Positions 258 through 15,592 of a stretch of 18,806 nt of DNA are shown piece by piece. The stretch spans positions 1 to 18,806 of the forward strand of contig JADGIF010000122.1 of assembly GCA_018985225.1 (NCBI GenBank), given 5' to 3'. Within the stretch, counting starts at the first letter, position 1. Every line of letters begins with the position of its first letter. The position numbers and the translations under genes are program-made. The stretch is from Amoeboradix gromovi X-113 (Eukaryota > Fungi > Sanchytriomycota). The notes beneath the pieces were generated by a model. That model saw only the letters and a program-made list of their open reading frames with translations. It was not told the DNA's origin and searched no databases.

Positions 258-1168
258 AATATAAAGTAAATAATTCATGCCTTCAGTTTTTTCTCTGGGA
301 CACACTGCACATTAAATCACCTAGATATTAATGCGAGGGGAGAAATTTATGTTGCCATTTCTTGTCTCCAAAGTTGATCTTGTAACAATTACTAACAACC
401 TTTCAATTACCAGAAGATAATTACAGCAAACAAACACATCCCTGTCGAAATCTACATCACAGCAGGTACATTGGCGTAATCTAAGGCAGTTTAGAACCAA
501 AATCTCTTTGGATGCTATGGTCCTGTTGCTAATATAGCACTACTCAACACTTATGAAACGTGGAATAAGATGCAAAAAAATTCTTTTTAACTTATAGATT
601 AAGCCATCCTTTGCAATACTATTTTGCGTTCTTTATATTGCGCCTATTCTTACACCGTCATAATAATTGTTTACATTACTTTGTGGCTTCTTTTATTTAG
701 ATTATTAGTGGCTATATTTCTGAATAACTTGAGCGAATTCTTACCGCCTAGGTAAAACGAAATTCTGGTGTTGACGGCTTTGTGATAATAAGAATCAGGA
801 GGAGGCATTAAACGACTATAGACAGAGCAGCCTGTATCCAGCAAATTTATGGCTACTTGTTAATTGTTTCAAGAAAAGTAAGTAAAAACAAGTGCCCATA
901 TTCTAACAAGCATTGTGTTAGTTAAACGGGAGTAAGGGTAAAAAATTTTTATTTTCTGCATTGATCTATCGATTCTAATTGATTGAGTCGATTCATCTAA
1001 TTACATAAGCTATTCGCTACATTATACTTTTTTCAGACTTTTCTAACTGCATAAGAACCCTATATCTTGTTTATCATAAATTGCGTTGTTTGGAGGCGTA
1101 AAGCAGCGAGGAACATGTTCTTGAAATGTGTGCATTCTTGTTTAATCTAGCCTTAGGATAATAGAAGC

Positions 1169-3069: not shown

Positions 3070-3235
3070 ATCTGAGACGTATATTAGAAACTGACCCGTC
3101 AGTTTGAATAGCTTTTCCAATGAATGTGCTTGGTAAGTAAAAAGAAGAAACCTTTACCAGAAGTCTCGACTTCTTACTTGGGCAATTCATAGGTGTGCAG
3201 AAATATCTATTTTACAACCTCCTATTTTTACAGTT

Positions 3236-3829
3236 GGGACATCAAATATAAAAACTGGACTAACTTTCTGTAACAACTTTGAACATTATTTCATCTTTAT
3301 TAATTTTATGGATTTAAGAGGCGAGTGGACATTCAGCTAGTTGCGGAGTTAACGAGTATGAAAGGAAAATAAATAACTATGTATCGAAATTTCAAAAATA
3401 AATATTCTGTACAGCTATTCTCTTACTCTTTCATCCAATCTTTATTTCAAATGAACCTCTGATTCATAATACTATTTCATAATTGAAATTCAGCAAGACA
3501 AGAGTCAGGGAGACTGTCCATAGATTACACTTCAAAGAAATGTAGTGTCTGTGAGAATGAAATAGACAAGAGTAATGATGTTAGTACAACATTACATAAT
3601 GACTCTAGAAAAGAGTACCGTCTAAGAAGATGCACCTCTTGCTTAGATGCTCAAAGACCTCATATATTTGAAAGAGATGTAGGGTCTTCTAGTTTTATTT
3701 TGAAGAGGGGAATACAATTAATGAGAGAATCTTGGTATAATAGAAGAAGATCTTTTATTAATGATAGCATTTCCTCCGTGTGGTGCACCTTTAAAAACGA
3801 GTTAGTCTAGTTTTTATATTTGGTGTCCC
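3236..3829 (+). mobile_element. Non-autonomous (internally deleted) TIR DNA transposon carrying a Fanzor/TnpB remnant; possibly IS630-Tc1-mariner type, in which case the ends extend to 3231/3834
   Basis: 30-bp TIRs GGGACATCAAATATAAAAACTGGACTAACT (3236-3265) and AGTTAGTCTAGTTTTTATATTTGGTGTCCC (3800-3829) match at 28/30. The left ~125 bp recurs at 18683-18806 and partly at 1-65. Flanks are TA-CAGTT and AAATG-CA. Confidence 0.9.
3487..3810 (+). pseudogene. Fanzor (eukaryotic TnpB-like RNA-guided nuclease) C-terminal fragment: zinc finger and RuvC-III
   Basis: The frame is open from 3487 to 3810 with no ATG upstream of the motifs. It reads ...SIDYTSKKCSVCENEIDKSNDVSTQLHNDSRKEYRLRRCTSCLDAQRPHIFERDVGSSSFILKRG..., matching the family pattern YTSKxCxxC-x(n)-CxxC-x(n)-RDxNAAxNI. 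Confidence 0.8.
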
Positions 3830-4045
3830 AAATGCATCAGCATCCCAATTAATTATGAGAGCACATGAATTGGCATTTTCTGTGTCCATTATGTGAAAAT
3901 GCTTGCTTGAAAAGATATGATTATATTTTGATTTAAAGGTATTATATCTTCCGTGAAATTAATTTTAACAGTCTTTCGTAAGGTCCGAGCGGCTCAAAAA
4001 AATCGGTAACACATTTATATATCTTAAAGTAACGACGACTAATAT

Positions 4046-4095
4046 GCAATTTTCCTCCGTTGCACAATACGTTGTGTACCTTCAAAACATGTTAA
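4046..4095 (+). repeat. Diverged copy of the element's 3' subterminal motif, containing a UACG-loop hairpin
   Basis: GCAATTTTCCTCCGT-TGCACAATACGTTGTGTA-CCTTCAAAACATGTTA aligns with 3767-3804 GCATTTCCTCCGT-GTGGTGCA-CCTTTAAAAACGAGTTA. Confidence 0.6.
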
Positions 4096-7394: not shown

Positions 7395-7432
7395 GAATTC
7401 AGAGTTTAAATAAAATTTGATTTATATGGATT

Positions 7433-8100
7433 TACTTGGGACACCGCCAAAATAAGACGAGCATTTAAAAAACCCATAATCATTGCCTATGATTTGCGTA
7501 ACAACTTGTAGTTATCAATTACTCTTCTTTGCCAACTTGATTTTTAGCACTGTTCAGTAAGCATTGAACTTGCTGAAGACTGCTACAATATGCACTCACA
7601 TCTCTATCTACATTTGTGTAACAATGTCACTTGCGCCAACAGGACCTGTACTTGATTGCTGAGTTCGGCCATAATTGCAATCATTCCGGTGAAGTTGTGA
7701 CGCTCTTTGGATGATCCTAACTCAGAAACAAGCAATTGAGATATATTTTTACAAGCTAAAAACACTAGCTTCTTGCTTTGTACACTACACAGCCCTTAAC
7801 CTCGTTTAATGCATTTCATGTTCGCATCTAATGCCTTTCTAAAAACCATCTCTGTATACCAAATCGGCATTTACTGATTCTTTGCTACTGGTAATGGTTT
7901 TAGAATTAATTCAGTTGTCTGACTAAATTTATTATAGAGCTTCAACGCTTTCTATTCTATTTCCCTCTTACTGACATCCAGTCTAGCTTCATATAACCCT
8001 ACTTATGTGGAAAACAACAGCAAACTTATTCCACAAAGTCATGCAAGATTCATTGCGTAAAAGATATTAATATGCCAACCAAGATCAGAAGATATCGACT
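7433..8100 (-). pseudogene. Heavily decayed TnpB/Fanzor-like relic ending in a related transposon right end (GGTGTCCCAA)
   Basis: One minus-strand frame, with five stops, contains KSISSDLG (D at 8084-8086), ELILKP (7895-7912) and LLVSELGSSKERHNF (7691-7735). After a frameshift it reads WRK*HCYTNVDRDVSA (7591-7638). The terminus TTGGGACACC is at 7436-7445. Confidence 0.45.
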
Positions 8101-8944
8101 TTAATTGAAGGAGCTTATTATGATTACAAAAACTACTTCGTTATGCAAACGTACCAGAATTCTGTGGTATCTTATAAACACGGTTTTATTTCTTCCCGTC
8201 TATGAAAAATGACTCAAAATCACTCCAGCCAAAGTATAACAAACTGAAGACATCGAAAACGATACCGCATGTCATTCTCTACCGGAACTATCAGGTCTCC
8301 CCGAACTCTAGCAATGAGATTCCTGTACCGTTTGCAGGGCGTTCAAGAATCTCTTGATGTTTCCACATTTTTCTCAAAATAGAATATCTTGTTGAAAAAA
8401 AACAGTCTTGAAAGACAACCCGATGCTATGTCTCGGGACTTCCCTGGCACTATAAATACTGAAGACACTGTAAGACGTCGTTTACAACCGGATAGAGAAA
8501 TCGTGAACACATGCATCCTATTAACCCTCCTTGAGATATAAAAGCGTGTGCTATCACTGTAACTCAGTGGCATCCACTGCAGTTTTCTCTCTAAAAGCTA
8601 GGACTCTTGATGAGGCAAGATATAAAAAAATTGAATTTTATGAAGGCAAGAAATAAAATATAAAACTTAGCGCATCACATTAACGAATATTGATTTGTGA
8701 AAAATCGATGTGCCATCAGGAAATTACGCTTTAAATTCTCTTTCTTGCCTATTCCTGATTTTAATGGTGATAAAACCCTTTGCAGGTTGATCCGCTTTCA
8801 TAGATACAGGTTCCGTAAAGCAGCTTTGATCAATTAGCAACCAATACTTTGAAAATGGGGCCTTGGGCAGATCAAAACTGCAAAAGAATTAATTTATCCT
8901 GTCAATAGCGATTTACTAAAAAAGACATTAAAGCCAAAAAATAA

Positions 8945-11041
8945 TCAGGTCGATCTGTCATTGCAACTAACATATCTGTTTTGAATCTTCAAATTGACTT
9001 CTCTCCATATGTCCTTAAACTCATTGCTCCATTTTCTAAAAGCTGTCAAATATTTCACTAACTTCATTATCTCAGTTGCAAAATCAGAATATCCCGATTC
9101 TACAAGTTCATTCAGATAATGCTCCACGTCTAGTTTGTCCTGTACATCCGGGGGCCCTTTATCTTGCCTATTTATAATCCACTCCCTAATTTTATCTAGA
9201 ATTGCTTTACGATCTCTGATATTATTAAAACCTGGCATTTCCCGTACTTTATCAAATTGTTTAGTATTTCCTCTCGCCCTTTTTAATTTCTGCAGGAGCC
9301 CGTTCTCATTTTGTTCTCTTTTCCAGTTGTGGTATACTTCTAGCTGAAGTGATGAGGGTAACTCATCATAAATACTCTTATTAACGGAATTGAAGAATTC
9401 CTGGTTTATTGATTTCTTCACATTTTTATTATCAAATTCAAACTTGGTGTTAAAATTCGTTTCCAATTGCAGTTGTAGCAGCTGAATACCTACACCTCTT
9501 AGATCACATATAGCGCTGTTGTACTTATCTGCTAGCAATGTTACATGCTTTAAAATTGTTTTGAAATCATTGGTTGTAGGAAATGTAGCTACAAATGACA
9601 CAGTGTCACATATTCCATGTCCTAGATACTTCGTAGGATTCACTGGCTGTCCCGGTTGTCTCACCATCAACTTTAACGCACATTTTGCACATAATGAATT
9701 TGAGCTTACCAACCTTTCGACCACCTGAGCAGCTAGTCCATTTAAAAACTCAATAAAGTCTTGCTTTACTGTAAATCGTATTCCCCAATTTATTTCGGCA
9801 GATACACTTTGCCTCTCATCCTTAATACTATTAAGAGATCTTTTATCAATTCCACGTAACATTTCATACATAGTGTGCCCTTTATTCTTTCCAAAGTGAA
9901 GCTGTAGATATTCTGAATCTTTTTTGATCAAATCACCACAATTTAGAATTCCCAAGTCCTTCATTGTCTTGCACATCTTCCAACCTACGCCCGGCAAAAC
10001 ATCCGGGCTATAGTCCTGAAGTACAGATTGTATTTTATCTTGTGATAAATAATATTCACCACAAGGTTTAGCCTTTTTAGTGGCAATTCGAGCTAAAATT
10101 TTATTATGACCTATTCCAGCAGATGCTTCTATTTTTATCTTGTTGAATACTTTCAGCCTCAAGTTGTTGATGTATGCAACGGCGTCCATTTCGTCTTCCA
10201 CGAAATTAGATATGTCTATAAAAGCCTCATCACAAGATATTGCCTCAATTTCATCGCAGTTGGCAATTAAAAGAGAGTAAAAATCTTTTGAAATTGAGCG
10301 GTATCTGTCAAAATCATATGGCAAGACAACTAGACTCGGGCACATCCGTTTTGCAGCGCCGAGATGCATTCCGTTTTTAATGGCAAATTCACGAGCTACA
10401 TAATTGCAGCAAGCAATGTCTGCAGAACTGGATTCGACATTTGATCCGTGGCTAACTGCAACGGGGCAATTTGCATATTGGGGGTAGTTTAACAAAGACG
10501 CAGAAACAAAAAAGGCGTCTAAATCAATGTGAGCTATGAATGTTTTTTTTTTCAAATTGGGCTTAAAAACTAGTCCAGAGCACCAATTTTTTAATTCTTC
10601 CTTCCATAAAGATAGATAATGTAACCTGGAATGCTGATAGAAGTCTCTAATAAATGCAGTAGACCCATTTTTAAACAACTCATAATTTTGATATTTCAAA
10701 ACTTTGCTGCTATTGATAGAGTCTGTTATAAATGAAGATCTGACAACAATCTTGTCTTTCCACATTTGTTTTTTAGATTCGGACAGTTCCTCTGCAATGA
10801 AAAAATCAACAGAGTTCAATCTATACTGCTCATATTTGCCACCGTTGGTCAAAATTAGCATTTTTAACTCTTTAAATGGGGGCGAGGTATCGCCGTTTAT
10901 GTGAAATGTTAAGTTCTCAAAAATTCTAGATTCTAACTCGATATGGTTGTTTTGGTAATTAAGCTTTTCAATCTTGTTGTTCATATACACATTGAATTCA
11001 CCATACTGAGGTACTGTAGTTTTTGGCTTCTGCTCAATCAT
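8945..11041 (-). CDS. REV1: Y-family translesion DNA polymerase / deoxycytidyl transferase Rev1
   Basis: N-terminal YMNNKIEKL and BRCT domain, N-digit FYQHSRLHYLS, catalytic HIDLDAFF and SCDEAFID, SVSAEINWGIRF, KYLGHGICD, and a UBM-like ELPSSLQLEV. Confidence 0.96.
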   Translation of the reverse strand: MIEQKPKTTVPQYGEFNVYMNNKIEKLNYQNNHIELESRIFENLTFHINGDTSPPFKELKMLILTNGGKYEQYRLNSVDFFIAEELSESKKQMWKDKIVVRSSFITDSINSSKVLKYQNYELFKNGSTAFIRDFYQHSRLHYLSLWKEELKNWCSGLVFKPNLKKKTFIAHIDLDAFFVSASLLNYPQYANCPVAVSHGSNVESSSADIACCNYVAREFAIKNGMHLGAAKRMCPSLVVLPYDFDRYRSISKDFYSLLIANCDEIEAISCDEAFIDISNFVEDEMDAVAYINNLRLKVFNKIKIEASAGIGHNKILARIATKKAKPCGEYYLSQDKIQSVLQDYSPDVLPGVGWKMCKTMKDLGILNCGDLIKKDSEYLQLHFGKNKGHTMYEMLRGIDKRSLNSIKDERQSVSAEINWGIRFTVKQDFIEFLNGLAAQVVERLVSSNSLCAKCALKLMVRQPGQPVNPTKYLGHGICDTVSFVATFPTTNDFKTILKHVTLLADKYNSAICDLRGVGIQLLQLQLETNFNTKFEFDNKNVKKSINQEFFNSVNKSIYDELPSSLQLEVYHNWKREQNENGLLQKLKRARGNTKQFDKVREMPGFNNIRDRKAILDKIREWIINRQDKGPPDVQDKLDVEHYLNELVESGYSDFATEIMKLVKYLTAFRKWSNEFKDIWREVNLKIQNRYVSCNDRST

Positions 11042-11115
11042 TCAACGGATAGAGTTCCTAATCCGTGTTTTCAAACAAACCTAAAATAAAAAAATGAGTA
11101 TTGCTTATTGTTTAT

Positions 11116-12867
11116 TTAATGATGAAATAGCCTAGTATTTGTAAAGCAATAGGTCATGTTAAATTCATTCGCTCTTTTGATAATTTGACTATCTTGTACA
11201 CTTCCACCTGGCGCACTAATATACTTCACTCCACTCTTAGCAGCTCTCTCCACATTATCATAAAATGGAAAGAAGGCGTCTGAGCTTAATGCAACATTGC
11301 GCATATGTTGCAGAAATTCGATTTTTTCAATCTCATTTAATTTCTGTGGAACCTGTTCAAAATTGGTTAAAGCAGCTTCAGAATTAAAATCCAAAAGTCC
11401 CTCAATGTACTGATCAATCGCATTCGACTTATCAGCTCTCTTTGTTCCTTTTTTGAATTTTAATCCCAAAACCTTCGGGTGACGTCTTAACCACCAATTA
11501 TCAGCTTTACTACCTGCTAATCTTGTACAGTGAATTCTAGATTGTTGTCCTGCTCCTAAACCAATAACCATACCATCATATGCATAGCAAACTGAGTTGG
11601 ACTGAGTGTACTTCAATGCAATTGTTGCCACAGTCAAGTCTGTAATAGCACTTGACGGCAACTCTTTAGATTGAGACACAATTTCAGAAAACGTTGATGG
11701 CTCAATTTCGACGGTGTTTCTTTTTTGCTTCAAATTGATGCCATAAACTTGCCTCTGTTCAAATAACTGAGGTTCGTAATACGGATCCATTTGCAAAATG
11801 CAGTATTTTCCATTTTTTTTCTTTTTCAACATCTCTAATGCATCGGCTGAGTACCCTGGCGCAATTATACCATCACTTACTTCACGAGATATAATGAAAG
11901 CAGTTTCGATATCACATTCATCACTTAACGCTATAAAGTCACCAAAGGAAGACATTCTGTCTCCACCTCGAGCTCTAGCATAGGCGCTCGCCAAAGGTGT
12001 AAGATGGACATTCTCAACCATGTAAATTTTGCGATCTTCATCGCTCAGCTCTTTTGCGATAGCCACTCCTGCAGGAGATACATGCTTAAATGAAGCAGAT
12101 GAGGCTTTTCCTGTTGCCTTCTTTAGCTCCTTAACTAGTGGCCATGCATTCAATGCATCCAACAAGTTAATGTAGCCAGGACTACCATTAAGTACCTTGA
12201 ATGGCAGAGCGTTGCTTTTTACGTAAACACTGGCTGGTGTCTGATGTGGATTAGCACCATACCTTAAAGATAGCAAGGACTGTGGCTCACCATACAGTTC
12301 TCTAAAATAGTACGAAATAGCTTCATCGTACTCGGCAGTATGGGAAAACGCTTTTAAAGCAAGTTTTTGACGAACACCCAGAGATACCGTGCCATCTTTA
12401 TCTAATTGGTCTGCAACAATATTGTAATCTTGAGGATTACAAATAACTGTAACTCTTTCATGGTTCTTCGCACCGGCACGTAATAATGTAACTCCCCCAA
12501 TGTCGATTTGCTCCATAGCATCAGAGAAGCTGACATTTTCTTTTGAAATGGTCTTTTGAAAAGGATACAAATTACAAACAACAAAGTCAATACGGTCATA
12601 TCCTCGTTGTCTTAAATCAGATATGTCACTTTCAATATTTCTAGCCAAAATTCCACCATGGACTGCAGGGTGAAGAGTTTTTACTCGTCCTCCGAGCATT
12701 TCTGGAGCCTGAGTAATTTCTGCAACATCCTCTACTTCTAAACCTGCGTCTCTAAGCTGTTTCGCTGTGCCGCCGCTGGCTACAAGTCTGCAAAATTTGC
12801 TTAATCTCTTTGCAAACTCTACTAGGTTAGTCTTATCTGACACAGACAATAGGGCGATTTGTTTCAT
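11116..12867 (-). CDS. ADE17: Bifunctional AICAR transformylase / IMP cyclohydrolase (PurH/ATIC, fungal Ade16/Ade17)
   Basis: [71 protein letters not shown] and terminal RLFHH. Confidence 0.97.
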
Positions 12868-12930: not shown

Positions 12931-13623
12931 TTAGTTCATAAATAGCTTCGTATTCAGCACAACATGAAGCCCTTGATATATGTCCAACGCAGAGTTAAGT
13001 TGGTTAACGTTTGGGTTATCTAGCAAATCAGACAGAGATGTATCCGGACTCTTCAGAGTCATTGCTACAAGTTCTTCAATCAATGGTTCCTGCTTGACCA
13101 TGAAAAGTTGAGAATGATATGCATCCATAACATCCAGCCTCACAGCAGCATTTACCACACCTTTTAAAAAAAAGAGTAAAAAGAGAAACAAAGCATCCCT
13201 CTTGGATAAACCATACTGTTTTGCAAAGATACCAAATATACAAGGCATGTATGGGTGCAAACCGTTGTCAAACTCCCCTCTGAGGGTGTGAATGTAATGT
13301 TTGCTATCCTTGAAAAAACATTTACACACGGACAAATAGTAAGATTTGCCTTGTTTTCTAGAACTGTTTAATTTTACGTCATTGATATTTAGTATGGAAT
13401 ATGCATATGACAATTCTACCAAAAAAGCCAGCTTTTCGCTATTATCAAATGCCATCGATACGAACGGCAGCTCAGTTCCAGACTGCTTTAATAAATCGAT
13501 TATAAACGGTTCTAATTCAGCTATACTTCCAATGTTTTTCATAACCTCTACGCCATTGGAAAAGCAAAAACCGCCGCTGGGAAAGGCAGAATCGCTTAAA
13601 TAATACATTATCGTAGAGCTCAT
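12931..13623 (-). CDS. ureF: Urease accessory protein UreF
   Basis: LSDSAFPSGGFCFSNGVE, SRKQGKS, VNAAVRL and C-terminal LDIYQGLHVVLNTKLFMN. Confidence 0.9.
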   Translation of the reverse strand: MSSTIMYYLSDSAFPSGGFCFSNGVEVMKNIGSIAELEPFIIDLLKQSGTELPFVSMAFDNSEKLAFLVELSYAYSILNINDVKLNSSRKQGKSYYLSVCKCFFKDSKHYIHTLRGEFDNGLHPYMPCIFGIFAKQYGLSKRDALFLFLLFFLKGVVNAAVRLDVMDAYHSQLFMVKQEPLIEELVAMTLKSPDTSLSDLLDNPNVNQLNSALDIYQGLHVVLNTKLFMN

Positions 13624-13694: not shown

Positions 13695-14510
13695 ATGAGT
13701 GGCTTTGTAAACATGATTAATCGTTCCCAACCAGATGAAATCTCTCGCTTTGTGAATAAGTTTCTACAAGATACTGAAAAGAACATGGAGATTATATCCA
13801 AAAATGTAGATACCATGGTAAATACAGAGAAAAAAACGCGAAAAAGAAATCTTCAATTCTCATCTGCTCTAAAAACGTCAGCAGATTCTGAGTTACCTCA
13901 GACTAGACTTGCACTTGCTGGAATCTCTGAAGCCATTCAAGATATTCAAGCTTATAGGAAAATAATGTATGATACTATAGAAGCCAGAGTCCAACAGCCT
14001 TTATCGCTTTATAAAACATTCGTTTCCAAGGCAAAAGATGATCTTAAGAGTAGAGAGTCTGCTAGGAAAAGGGAAAACGATAAACAGAATTTAATGGAGA
14101 AATTGAACATAAAAGAAAGTAATAGAGCAAAGCTTGCTAAAGGACATTTAGAATTGGCTGGCGCTAATCATGAGATGTTCCATACCTCACTAGCACTTGC
14201 AGAACACATTGATTCCTTAGAGGCGAAAAAGATTAGCGACGTTAGAGCAATTTTAAAAGATTATCTGACCATTCAAATGGAGTTTCATTGTCGATCAGTG
14301 GAAATACTAACAGATGCTGTGGGATTCCTTGAATCTTGTGAAATGGATAACGACATCGGCGAAATAAGAGAAAGAATGAGAACCATAGGACTTGGTGAAT
14401 ATAATGGGACGCCTGTTAGTAAATCTGTTTATTCCTACGCCAAGCACTTTTTGTCCAAGATACTTTTCCCATGTTCTTCATATTCCTGTTTTGTAACCCA
14501 CATACTTTGA
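13695..14510 (+). CDS. FAM92: FAM92/CIBAR BAR-domain protein (Chibby-interacting, ciliary transition zone)
   Basis: [37 protein letters not shown] and [32 protein letters not shown] follow the FAM92 pattern. Start taken at ATG 13695 (ATG 13641 also possible). The 3' end overlaps ARP4 and is uncertain. Confidence 0.8.
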
Positions 14511-15592
14511 AATGAATCACAAGATGCCAATATTGATCCTCCTATCCATGATCCAAATCTGCGCTCACTAGATTGGCTACCAGCGTACACTTTAACTTTT
14601 CCCTTCATTATACCACTCCTTTGTATCTCAGCCTAAATTAATATATGAAGTACTTCTAGCCGTTCTGCAAACCCATTTATCGATGATGTACCGCCTGTCA
14701 GTACAATATTACCAGGCAATAGATTTTTACATTCATTATCACACATGTCATAAGATGCTTGCACCATTTTTATAATCGACTGGTATTCCTGGTTTAGAGA
14801 AGATGGGTTAAATAAAAGGTCAGTTATAAAAGGTTCTTTGGTAAAAGACCTGTTATATCCATCAGGAAACTCAAATGGTCTACCTTGTTGCACTTGTACT
14901 GAATTAAAAGAATTTGAGGTGAAAACATGTTCCTTAAATACATGCATAATGTCCATTTGCAATTGCTTCTTCACTTTGTCATTAATCGCTATTTTTAGCC
15001 TATTTTCAGGATCAGGTAACTTTCCAGGTTCGAGAATAGGTTTTTTGTCAACAAGCAATGAAGGATACGGATCATATTGATATTCCTTTTTAAGATAGTC
15101 TAGCGCATACTGAGATAGAAATTCACCAGCTAGAGTAGATGTTTGCACACTATTCTTGACATGGTACCCTTCATGTACTGCACAAACTGTTGTTTGTTTA
15201 TGCCCTACATCAATTACCAAAGCGTTAGTTTTTGCAGCATGAAATGTGCTCAATACAGGTCTACAGCAAAAATACAAACAAGGTACTTGTTCAAACAACC
15301 TGTCCATTAATGCCACTCTTTCCTTTGTATTTGGTGCATCTGGTATCATAAGTGCGTGCTCGCTCATATCTAACCCCATATATCCGTACGCTTGATTTAA
15401 TAGTTCATCATAATCGTCTTCCTTGATCTCAATAGTTGACAATGGTTTAAATACGTTTCTCAATACCTTTTGCCCATCCGTGAACAGAGTAGATGGAGTC
15501 ACAAATGCAGGTAAATCGGTCCCAGCATGTCCAAATTTTGTCTCGTAACTTCCATGGTCAAATACTACCGCATTCCTCTCTACAAATGTCAT
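14435..15592 (-). CDS. ARP4: Nuclear actin-related protein Arp4/ACTL6-like; two exons (15592-14654 and 14632-14435)
   Basis: Actin fold: [44 protein letters not shown]. The missing C-terminus ([15 protein letters not shown]...[13 protein letters not shown]...KKCLA*) resumes immediately after a 21-nt GT-AG segment. Confidence 0.85.
14633..14653 (-). other. 21-nt spliceosomal intron in ARP4
   Basis: GTACTTCATATATTAATTTAG has GT-AG ends, is phase 0 and ends in an in-frame TAG. Removing it gives FAERLE|AEIQ and restores the actin-family C-terminus. Confidence 0.85.

Follow-up and report, generated by a model that had tools for sequence, protein, structure and literature searches.

The closest described system to the element analysed here is Spu-1 of Spizellomyces punctatus, which is, like Amoeboradix gromovi, a zoosporic fungus (PMC10432273). 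Spu-1 is an element of about 2.1 kb that encodes Fanzor1 only, has 30-nt TIRs and no transposase, and is accompanied by ghosts, copies of about 550 nt that keep both ends and the omegaRNA (PMC10432273). The ghost RNAs are functional, and the conserved motif of Spu-1 lies at the left flank only, where the CA is part of its TAM (PMC10432273). The Amoeboradix family resembles Spu-1 in each of these structural respects, but there are clear differences: Spu-1 has 134 ghosts, whereas the Amoeboradix family comprises about 740 copies in a genome of less than half the size; the 75-nt scaffold of Spu-1 lies between stop codon and TIR, whereas here the stop codon falls within the TIR, and a scaffold of about 220 nt is predicted inside the ORF; and Spu-1 has a TA target and a CATA TAM, as opposed to a 4-bp ANNT target and GRG..CYC ends. 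SpuFz1 and the proteins of the Amoeboradix family are remotely similar (profile E 3e-4). The best solved relative is Fanzor1 of Guillardia theta (GtFz1; PDB 9CER), which has a multi-stem omegaRNA; its loci lack IRs and its third catalytic residue is Asn (PMC10432273, PMC11423790), whereas the Amoeboradix clade has TIRs and keeps Asp. The Sola2-Fanzor1 elements DFa-1/2/3 and PPa-1/4/5 of dictyostelids likewise carry Fanzor1 between TIRs and have 4-bp AT-rich TSDs, but they contain a Sola2 transposase or its remnants, are 5-10 kb long and have TIRs of 12-21 bp (PMC3627910); in the Amoeboradix family the TIRs measure about 30 bp and no complete copy seen has a transposase. SfAV-1 and related insect-virus Fanzor1 elements are, similarly, virus-borne, Fanzor-only TIR elements with a 4-bp TSD, and their RNA has three stems including TIR and TSD (PMC3627910, PMC10711439). 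They differ in their TTAN TSD, 13-bp TIR and insect-virus hosts, while the elements described here reside in NCLDV contigs and a fungus. The kind of element is already known from the Spu-1 ghosts, and the new parts are the predicted ORF-embedded scaffold, the copy load, the Sola-like ends and the virus link. A literature search found no paper naming Fanzor together with Amoeboradix.

The host, A. gromovi, is a tiny parasitic sanchytrid fungus whose genome has 10.5 Mb and 36.3% GC (PMC8371127); fragments related to the element are among its proteins in EukProt. The window, the whole 18,806-nt stretch of DNA analysed, is a complete contig (C273) of the 10.55-Mb, 1319-contig assembly, and its 594-base piece 3236-3829 is one copy of a miniature TIR transposon. 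The initial annotation of this piece had described 30-bp TIRs enclosing an open frame, the motif series DYTSKK-CSVC-x26-CTSC-x10-RDVGSS, and a sibling end with about 94% identity in the same window. All three were confirmed: the TIRs are 28/30 identical, the frame is free of stops from 3487 to 3807 and terminates within the right TIR, the motif series occurs exactly in the window translation, and the sibling matches at 118 of 125 positions. The features identified are as follows:

3229-3235, + strand: left flank TAC-AGTT, the (T)AC-ANNT target-site motif and presumptive TAM, with the left TSD copy at 3232-3235
3236-3265, + strand: left TIR, 30 bp, GGG terminus
3266-3482, + strand: non-coding sequence next to the left TIR, presumably the promoter of the Fanzor gene (alignment of 28 copies)
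3483-3530, + strand: Fanzor N-terminal coding remnant LKFSKTRVRETVHRLH, offset by one frame from the C-terminal part
3525-3530, + strand: deletion junction, TTACAC microhomology (6 nt)
3526-3810, + strand: Fanzor1 C-terminal coding remnant with YTSK, C4 zinc finger and RuvC-III Asp; translation not expected
3541-3642, + strand: C4 zinc finger
3676-3678, + strand: RuvC-III Asp codon
3808-3810, + strand: stop TAG inside the right TIR
3613-3830, + strand: predicted omegaRNA scaffold embedded in coding sequence, stems A, B and C (covariation, fold)
3613-3652, + strand: stem-loop A (predicted)
3705-3777, + strand: stem-loop B (predicted)
3781-3830, + strand: stem-loop C (predicted), in which subterminal sequence pairs with the right TIR and the first TSD base
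3800-3829, + strand: right TIR with CCC terminus, matching that of the intact giant-virus element L087 at 29/30 positions
3830-3833, + strand: right TSD copy AAAT
3830-3850, + strand: unique right flank including the TSD copy, predicted guide by analogy with SpuFz1 and SfAV Fanzor1 (PMC10432273, PMC10711439)
18683-18806, + strand: left end of a sibling copy that runs off the end of the contig
1-65, - strand: left end of another sibling copy, truncated at the start of the contig and without the terminal GGGA

Ordinary fungal genes surround the element. A UreF urease accessory gene is located at 12931-13623 (minus strand), and its neighbours are compact, intron-poor fungal genes (REV1, ADE16/17, SPT6, HECT ligase). 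The window also contains other nuclease relics: one at 297-520 (minus strand) of a different Fanzor1-like family (LRLRQCTCC...FDRDV) with a related TGTCCC terminus and an AGAG flank, and a third, older TnpB/Fanzor-like relic at 7438-8100 (minus strand; ...NVDRDVSA) that ends GGTGTCCC-AAGT. The latter is probably repeated, because a unique public contig ends near 8126.

The 107-aa frame within the element is no gene and would do nothing by itself. No start codon precedes residue 79, and the first 13 residues come from N-terminal Fanzor codons read out of frame, which are fused at TTACAC to the YTSK codons. The frame is therefore a chimera without a start, and the possibility of a real short ORF was rejected. 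The remnant upstream of the junction matches the N-termini of relatives L088, P0003 and P0006 (0-2 of 1000 shuffles). With this breakpoint mapped, the proposal that the copy is a deletion derivative of a Fanzor1-type element holds, and RuvC-I and the Glu preceding YTS, rightly reported as missing, were both removed by the same deletion. Judging from relatives of 585-642 aa, this deletion would have taken out about 1.5 kb of the gene. The start-codon segment is also deleted from the left region of the window copy (3266-3482), but the ATG is kept in the longer copies L014, L017 and L009. In the longer copies it lies 240-330 nt from the left TIR, and the peptide encoded after it is basic, NLS-like and alignable with the N-termini of the relatives, so that there is no room for a transposase in the parent. 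The main value of the element is its retained, predicted RNA scaffold rather than the peptide.

By itself, the window peptide matched Pfam PF07282 below threshold (E 0.015) and nothing in the PDB, and L061, a longer copy on contig C1157, had no PDB match by phmmer; a profile was therefore needed. Pfam had no match for intact clade members. Between the contig start and the same right TIR, L061 has 436 open codons, which include SDG, GIDPG (D125), WGDG, NESYTS (E340), the C4 finger and ERD (D394). Its ORF is 63% identical to the window peptide (E 9e-32), and with 75% nucleotide identity it represents a sibling subfamily of the window element. Among 1.84 billion representatives, 16 proteins match L061. 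The profile of these proteins matches GtFz1 with E 5.9e-17 over the WED TDG, RuvC-I, RuvC-II, the zinc finger and RuvC-III, and SpuFz1 with E 3.4e-4. The RuvC-I Asp in DPG is present as D125 in L061 and in every full-length relative, and deleted in the window copy. The rearranged RuvC-II Glu beside the zinc finger is E340 (NESYTS) in L061 and was lost at the window copy's junction, and the canonical RuvC-II site holds an inert residue (WGDG in L061). The C4 zinc finger followed by the RuvC-III RD occurs in the window (3541-3678) as well as in the relatives, which also have SDG/TDG in the WED domain and, with 515-642 aa, a basic N-terminus and a helical REC2 insertion, the make-up of Fanzor1 proteins of about 500-700 aa. 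In a fold search with the low-confidence model of P0003 the top six matches were SpuFz and PpFz (E 4e-5 to 1e-3); since the AlphaFold models are weak (pLDDT 51 and 59), these matches are supportive only. Judged by its sequences, the family is Fanzor1. The initial annotation was thus right about identity, as the longer copy with the same right end has the motif set and the family profile, unlike the window peptide, finds GtFz1. It was also right that the RuvC-III Asp is kept, but the RDVGSS context is not atypical, RD[VAFGIM][GA]S[SA] being the norm of the clade.

A Fanzor2/IS607 origin was rejected, because the element has TIRs and a 4-bp target and is distinct from the genome's IS607 family (L071). 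L071 (G000:C542) encodes a serine recombinase and a 569-aa TnpB/Fanzor2; its family has 560 candidates genome-wide, and hundreds of short derivatives keep the C-terminus. With the window family beside it, there are at least two very large MITE families of RNA-guided nucleases in the genome. An open frame of 693 aa with weak similarity (26%) to the Fanzor of L061 (G000:C363:1730-2110, minus strand) is, by sequence, a candidate intact Fanzor1 of another family. Contigs C574, C133 and C1001 of the same assembly (G000) contain a more distant subfamily (P0009; 34-37%) that is nearer to the viral relatives P0003 and P0007, hinting at more than one acquisition.

The initial annotation suggested that an intact Fanzor may exist elsewhere in this genome. 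The C1157 copy is open through the D-E-D triad up to a contig end, where it is cut, and belongs to the sibling subfamily; no intact full-length parent gene is assembled. All other assembled parent-type copies carry stops or deletions: none of the N-terminal matches has an open frame longer than 143 aa, and a near-complete copy on C33 is broken. More than half of the element ends coincide with contig breaks. The expected full-length copy with transposase does not exist as such, as the parent is transposase-less and the complete relatives encode Fanzor alone. On C488 (G000; 7400-12770, minus strand), a Fanzor gene of the family is split at about residue 200 by an insert of about 4.2 kb that contains a DUF7869 gene. 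A parent with its own transposase was rejected, because by its coordinates this DUF7869 gene is nested in the split Fanzor gene.

About 740-850 copies of the element are present in the genome. The TIR pattern has 1587 matches genome-wide (reversed control, 0) and the right subterminal pattern occurs at 739 places. Taking about 500 bp per copy, the family makes up about 3.5% of the genome. At least 108 DNA matches to the element were obtained among 40 scored of 1430 candidates, and peptide matches exceed 150. Complete copies measure 390-726 bp and are 6-8% diverged. They are non-autonomous Fanzor ghosts that occur in multiple copies, keep both ends and the predicted omegaRNA region and have lost the nuclease ORF. 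The stem A sequence was found 345 times. Among the listed plus-strand right ends, 28/52 are cut by a contig start before stem A; with 24/52 uncut, about 340 of the 739 right ends could show it. The YTSK site, situated 90 nt upstream of stem A, occurs 38 times genome-wide. The predicted omegaRNA region is kept by nearly all assembled copies. The copies are mosaic, with linkage decaying within tens of bases and more than 80% of the site pairs 30-80 or >200 bp apart failing the four-gamete test.

Such retention could also be that of an ordinary MITE, in which a dead Fanzor1 element was amplified via its transposase-binding ends and the scaffold is inert founder-effect baggage in a host without active Fanzor. 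We regard this as possible but unlikely. It would account for the stops and deletions in the assembled parent-type copies other than C1157, for the dominance of few breakpoint classes, for the 6-8% divergence and for the loss of scaffold parts in some copies, which have deletions within the predicted scaffold. Moreover, most copies retain 268-274 nt, so that the breakpoints are not clustered at the edge of the scaffold, and the retention could be due to founder effects. Against it, in a biased sample with which the genome-wide counts agree, each of at least six breakpoint classes (223-312 nt from the end) falls outside the predicted scaffold; the 436 open codons of C1157 include an intact triad; and the strong left-only flank bias described below suggests TAM selection.

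With the stop codon inside the right TIR, a scaffold necessarily shares sequence with the ORF; the final ~220 nt are predicted to be an omegaRNA written into coding sequence. In a 12-sequence alignment, whose proteins are 30-65% identical, the three-stem model has 87% paired cells and 10 pairs with two-sided changes. It beats slid controls, and 0/500 shuffles were as good, although kinship of the sequences inflates the shuffle test. RNAalifold independently recovers stem A (3613-3652) but, on the gapped alignment, not stems B and C, which were named from single-sequence folds. Stem A pairs the codon preceding the third cysteine of the zinc finger with the codon preceding the fourth. Across lineages these codon pairs are reverse-complementary (K/F, R/S, M/H and R/A, with M/D at 2/3 positions), and 11/12 positions pair in the four changed lineages (p about 2e-4). 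There is no protein rationale for the K/F, R/S, M/H and R/A codon pairing. The terminal stem, in which subterminal sequence pairs with the TIR, reaches z -3.0 to -4.8 in the window copy, L085 and L087, is weak in L061 and L089, covaries from GGG/CCC to GAG/CTC in the viral relatives and is maintained by G-U wobble. Window 3610-3845 folds with z -3.4, although the optimal fold of this single sequence pairs stem A in a different register. An Rfam search of the predicted scaffold gave no match. The motif joining stems B and C recurs, its insert being longer, at 4051-4087 of the window (0 expected by chance); it is possibly a decayed right-end fragment.

The retained 3' sequence might instead be selected as DNA, for instance as a subterminal transposase-binding site or hairpin, or as a short zinc-finger peptide, and not as guide RNA. 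An open C-terminal frame in 19/28 sampled copies and a terminal hairpin that folds on the opposite strand as well agree with this. Nevertheless, it appears highly improbable: the frame lacks a start codon and the junctions are out of frame, many copies have lost the first zinc knuckle or carry frameshifts, G-U wobble preserves sense-strand pairing in L087, L007 and L061, and the left end has no comparable hairpin structure.

The copies are preceded by (T)AC-ANNT and followed by ANNT(G), the left flank being significantly more constrained. For 36 left ends this asymmetry amounts to p 7e-5 at position -5, 2e-3 at -6 and 6e-4 at -7. The left (T)AC-ANNT motif recurs in viral and metagenomic relatives, as at L088 and L093. 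A symmetric transposase would not yield a one-sided motif, and by analogy with the left-only CA of Spu-1 we infer a TAM of about (T)ACANNT. The TSD copies are identical in 7/28 elements (2.2 expected by chance, p 0.002), including the non-consensus ATTG and ATAA. The others look randomly paired, among them those of the window copy (AGTT left, AAAT right). Simple decay as the cause of this mismatch was rejected, because position 1 matches in 27/28 elements and positions 2-3 are near chance. Assembly through the repeat tangle could have swapped flanks (no Logan public contig spans the window element), but the TSDs of a 51-bp viral element and of L093, which is single-copy, are imperfect as well. 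As biological causes, ectopic recombination and gap repair templated by ectopic copies come into question. No empty target site was found among the loci examined.

The termini are GGG/GAG...CCC/CTC in 27/28 copies and in the viral relatives. Sola2 transposons reportedly have GRG...CYC termini. Their TSDs are 4 bp long and AT-rich (PMC3627910). The mobilising transposase may therefore be Sola-like, with DUF7869 as an unproven candidate. The genome has 29 DUF7869 loci with ORFs of up to 687 aa, and about 870 bp downstream of one of them (C576) lies a near-identical TIR, which is flanked by AGAT and lacks a Fanzor remnant; this link to the mobiliser is suggestive only.

Intact relatives with the same ends are found in giant-virus contigs and encode proteins of 515-642 aa. 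L087 is a complete element of 2071 bp that consists of the left TIR and a 642-aa Fanzor1 gene with full triad, whose stop lies inside the right TIR. Its right TIR is 29/30 identical to that of the window copy, compared with 31% identity of the proteins. The L087-type right end occurs with five different flanks, on contigs that carry NCLDV major capsid protein, D5 primase, VLTF3 and ribonucleotide reductase. The second complete element, L093 (515 aa, 31-bp TIRs), lies on an 86-kb contig with VLTF3, and both encode Fanzor alone. Kin with the same or related TIRs were detected in soil and water metagenomes (L085, L088, L089 and L092), and the relatives form one clade with moderate support (90/96). 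The exact TIR is absent from IMG/VR. Several observations concern the surroundings of these elements: the 51-bp element (L099:2132-2182; flanks AAGT and AATT), in a giant-virus-like contig, is composed of two fused TIRs only; a histone H3-type gene adjoins the element in the giant-virus-like contig of L087 (1-141); the giant-virus-like contig of L093 encodes a hybrid histidine kinase (13978-15465) and an ADP-ribosyltransferase (PF03496) match (18332-19216); and a 299-aa ORF that abuts the element end in L096 (5725-6621) resembles a tyrosine recombinase by eye, with no Pfam match.

Building on the internal deletion at a microhomology, the copy number, the Fanzor1 ancestry and the intact relatives with the same ends, we consider it probable that 3236-3829 is a non-autonomous ghost of a transposase-less Fanzor1 TIR element of about 2 kb that takes part in guide-directed retention or homing. 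The parent would consist of a TIR, a promoter, an NLS-bearing Fanzor1 ORF and a stop inside the right TIR. A cut-and-paste DDE transposase acting in trans, probably Sola-like, would insert copies at (T)AC-ANNT sites and thereby duplicate 4 bp. Transcription from the retained left region would then yield an omegaRNA, with the ~220-nt scaffold provided by the old coding sequence and the guide by the copy's own right flank. Fanzor1 from a rare intact copy could load these ghost RNAs and cut an empty site, be it vacated or allelic, that reads TAC-ANNT-protospacer, and would spare the occupied site with its CCC-ANNT-protospacer; as the bases upstream of ANNT differ, the nuclease could tell one from the other. 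Repair from the occupied homolog would restore or spread the copy. A wider scenario, which we put forward as speculative and rather doubtful, is that of a Fanzor1 clade shuttled between viruses and fungi with its omegaRNA in its own codons, whose ~700 guide cassettes are still read by a trans-acting Fanzor. Breaks repaired from ectopic copies would produce the mosaic copies and overwritten TSD centres, amounting to RNA-guided gene conversion on several percent of the genome.

The Fanzor1 clade is apparently undescribed, and it supplies natural intact genes of 515-642 aa together with a predicted scaffold and a predicted TAM. The 29/30 identity of the right TIR between fungus and giant virus, at 31% protein identity, directly supports virus-mediated spread of Fanzor1 and, likewise, a shared mobilising transposase. 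With hundreds of ghost loci and their one-sided flank bias, a native role of Fanzor, the retention of transposons by trans-acting guides, becomes testable in one genome.
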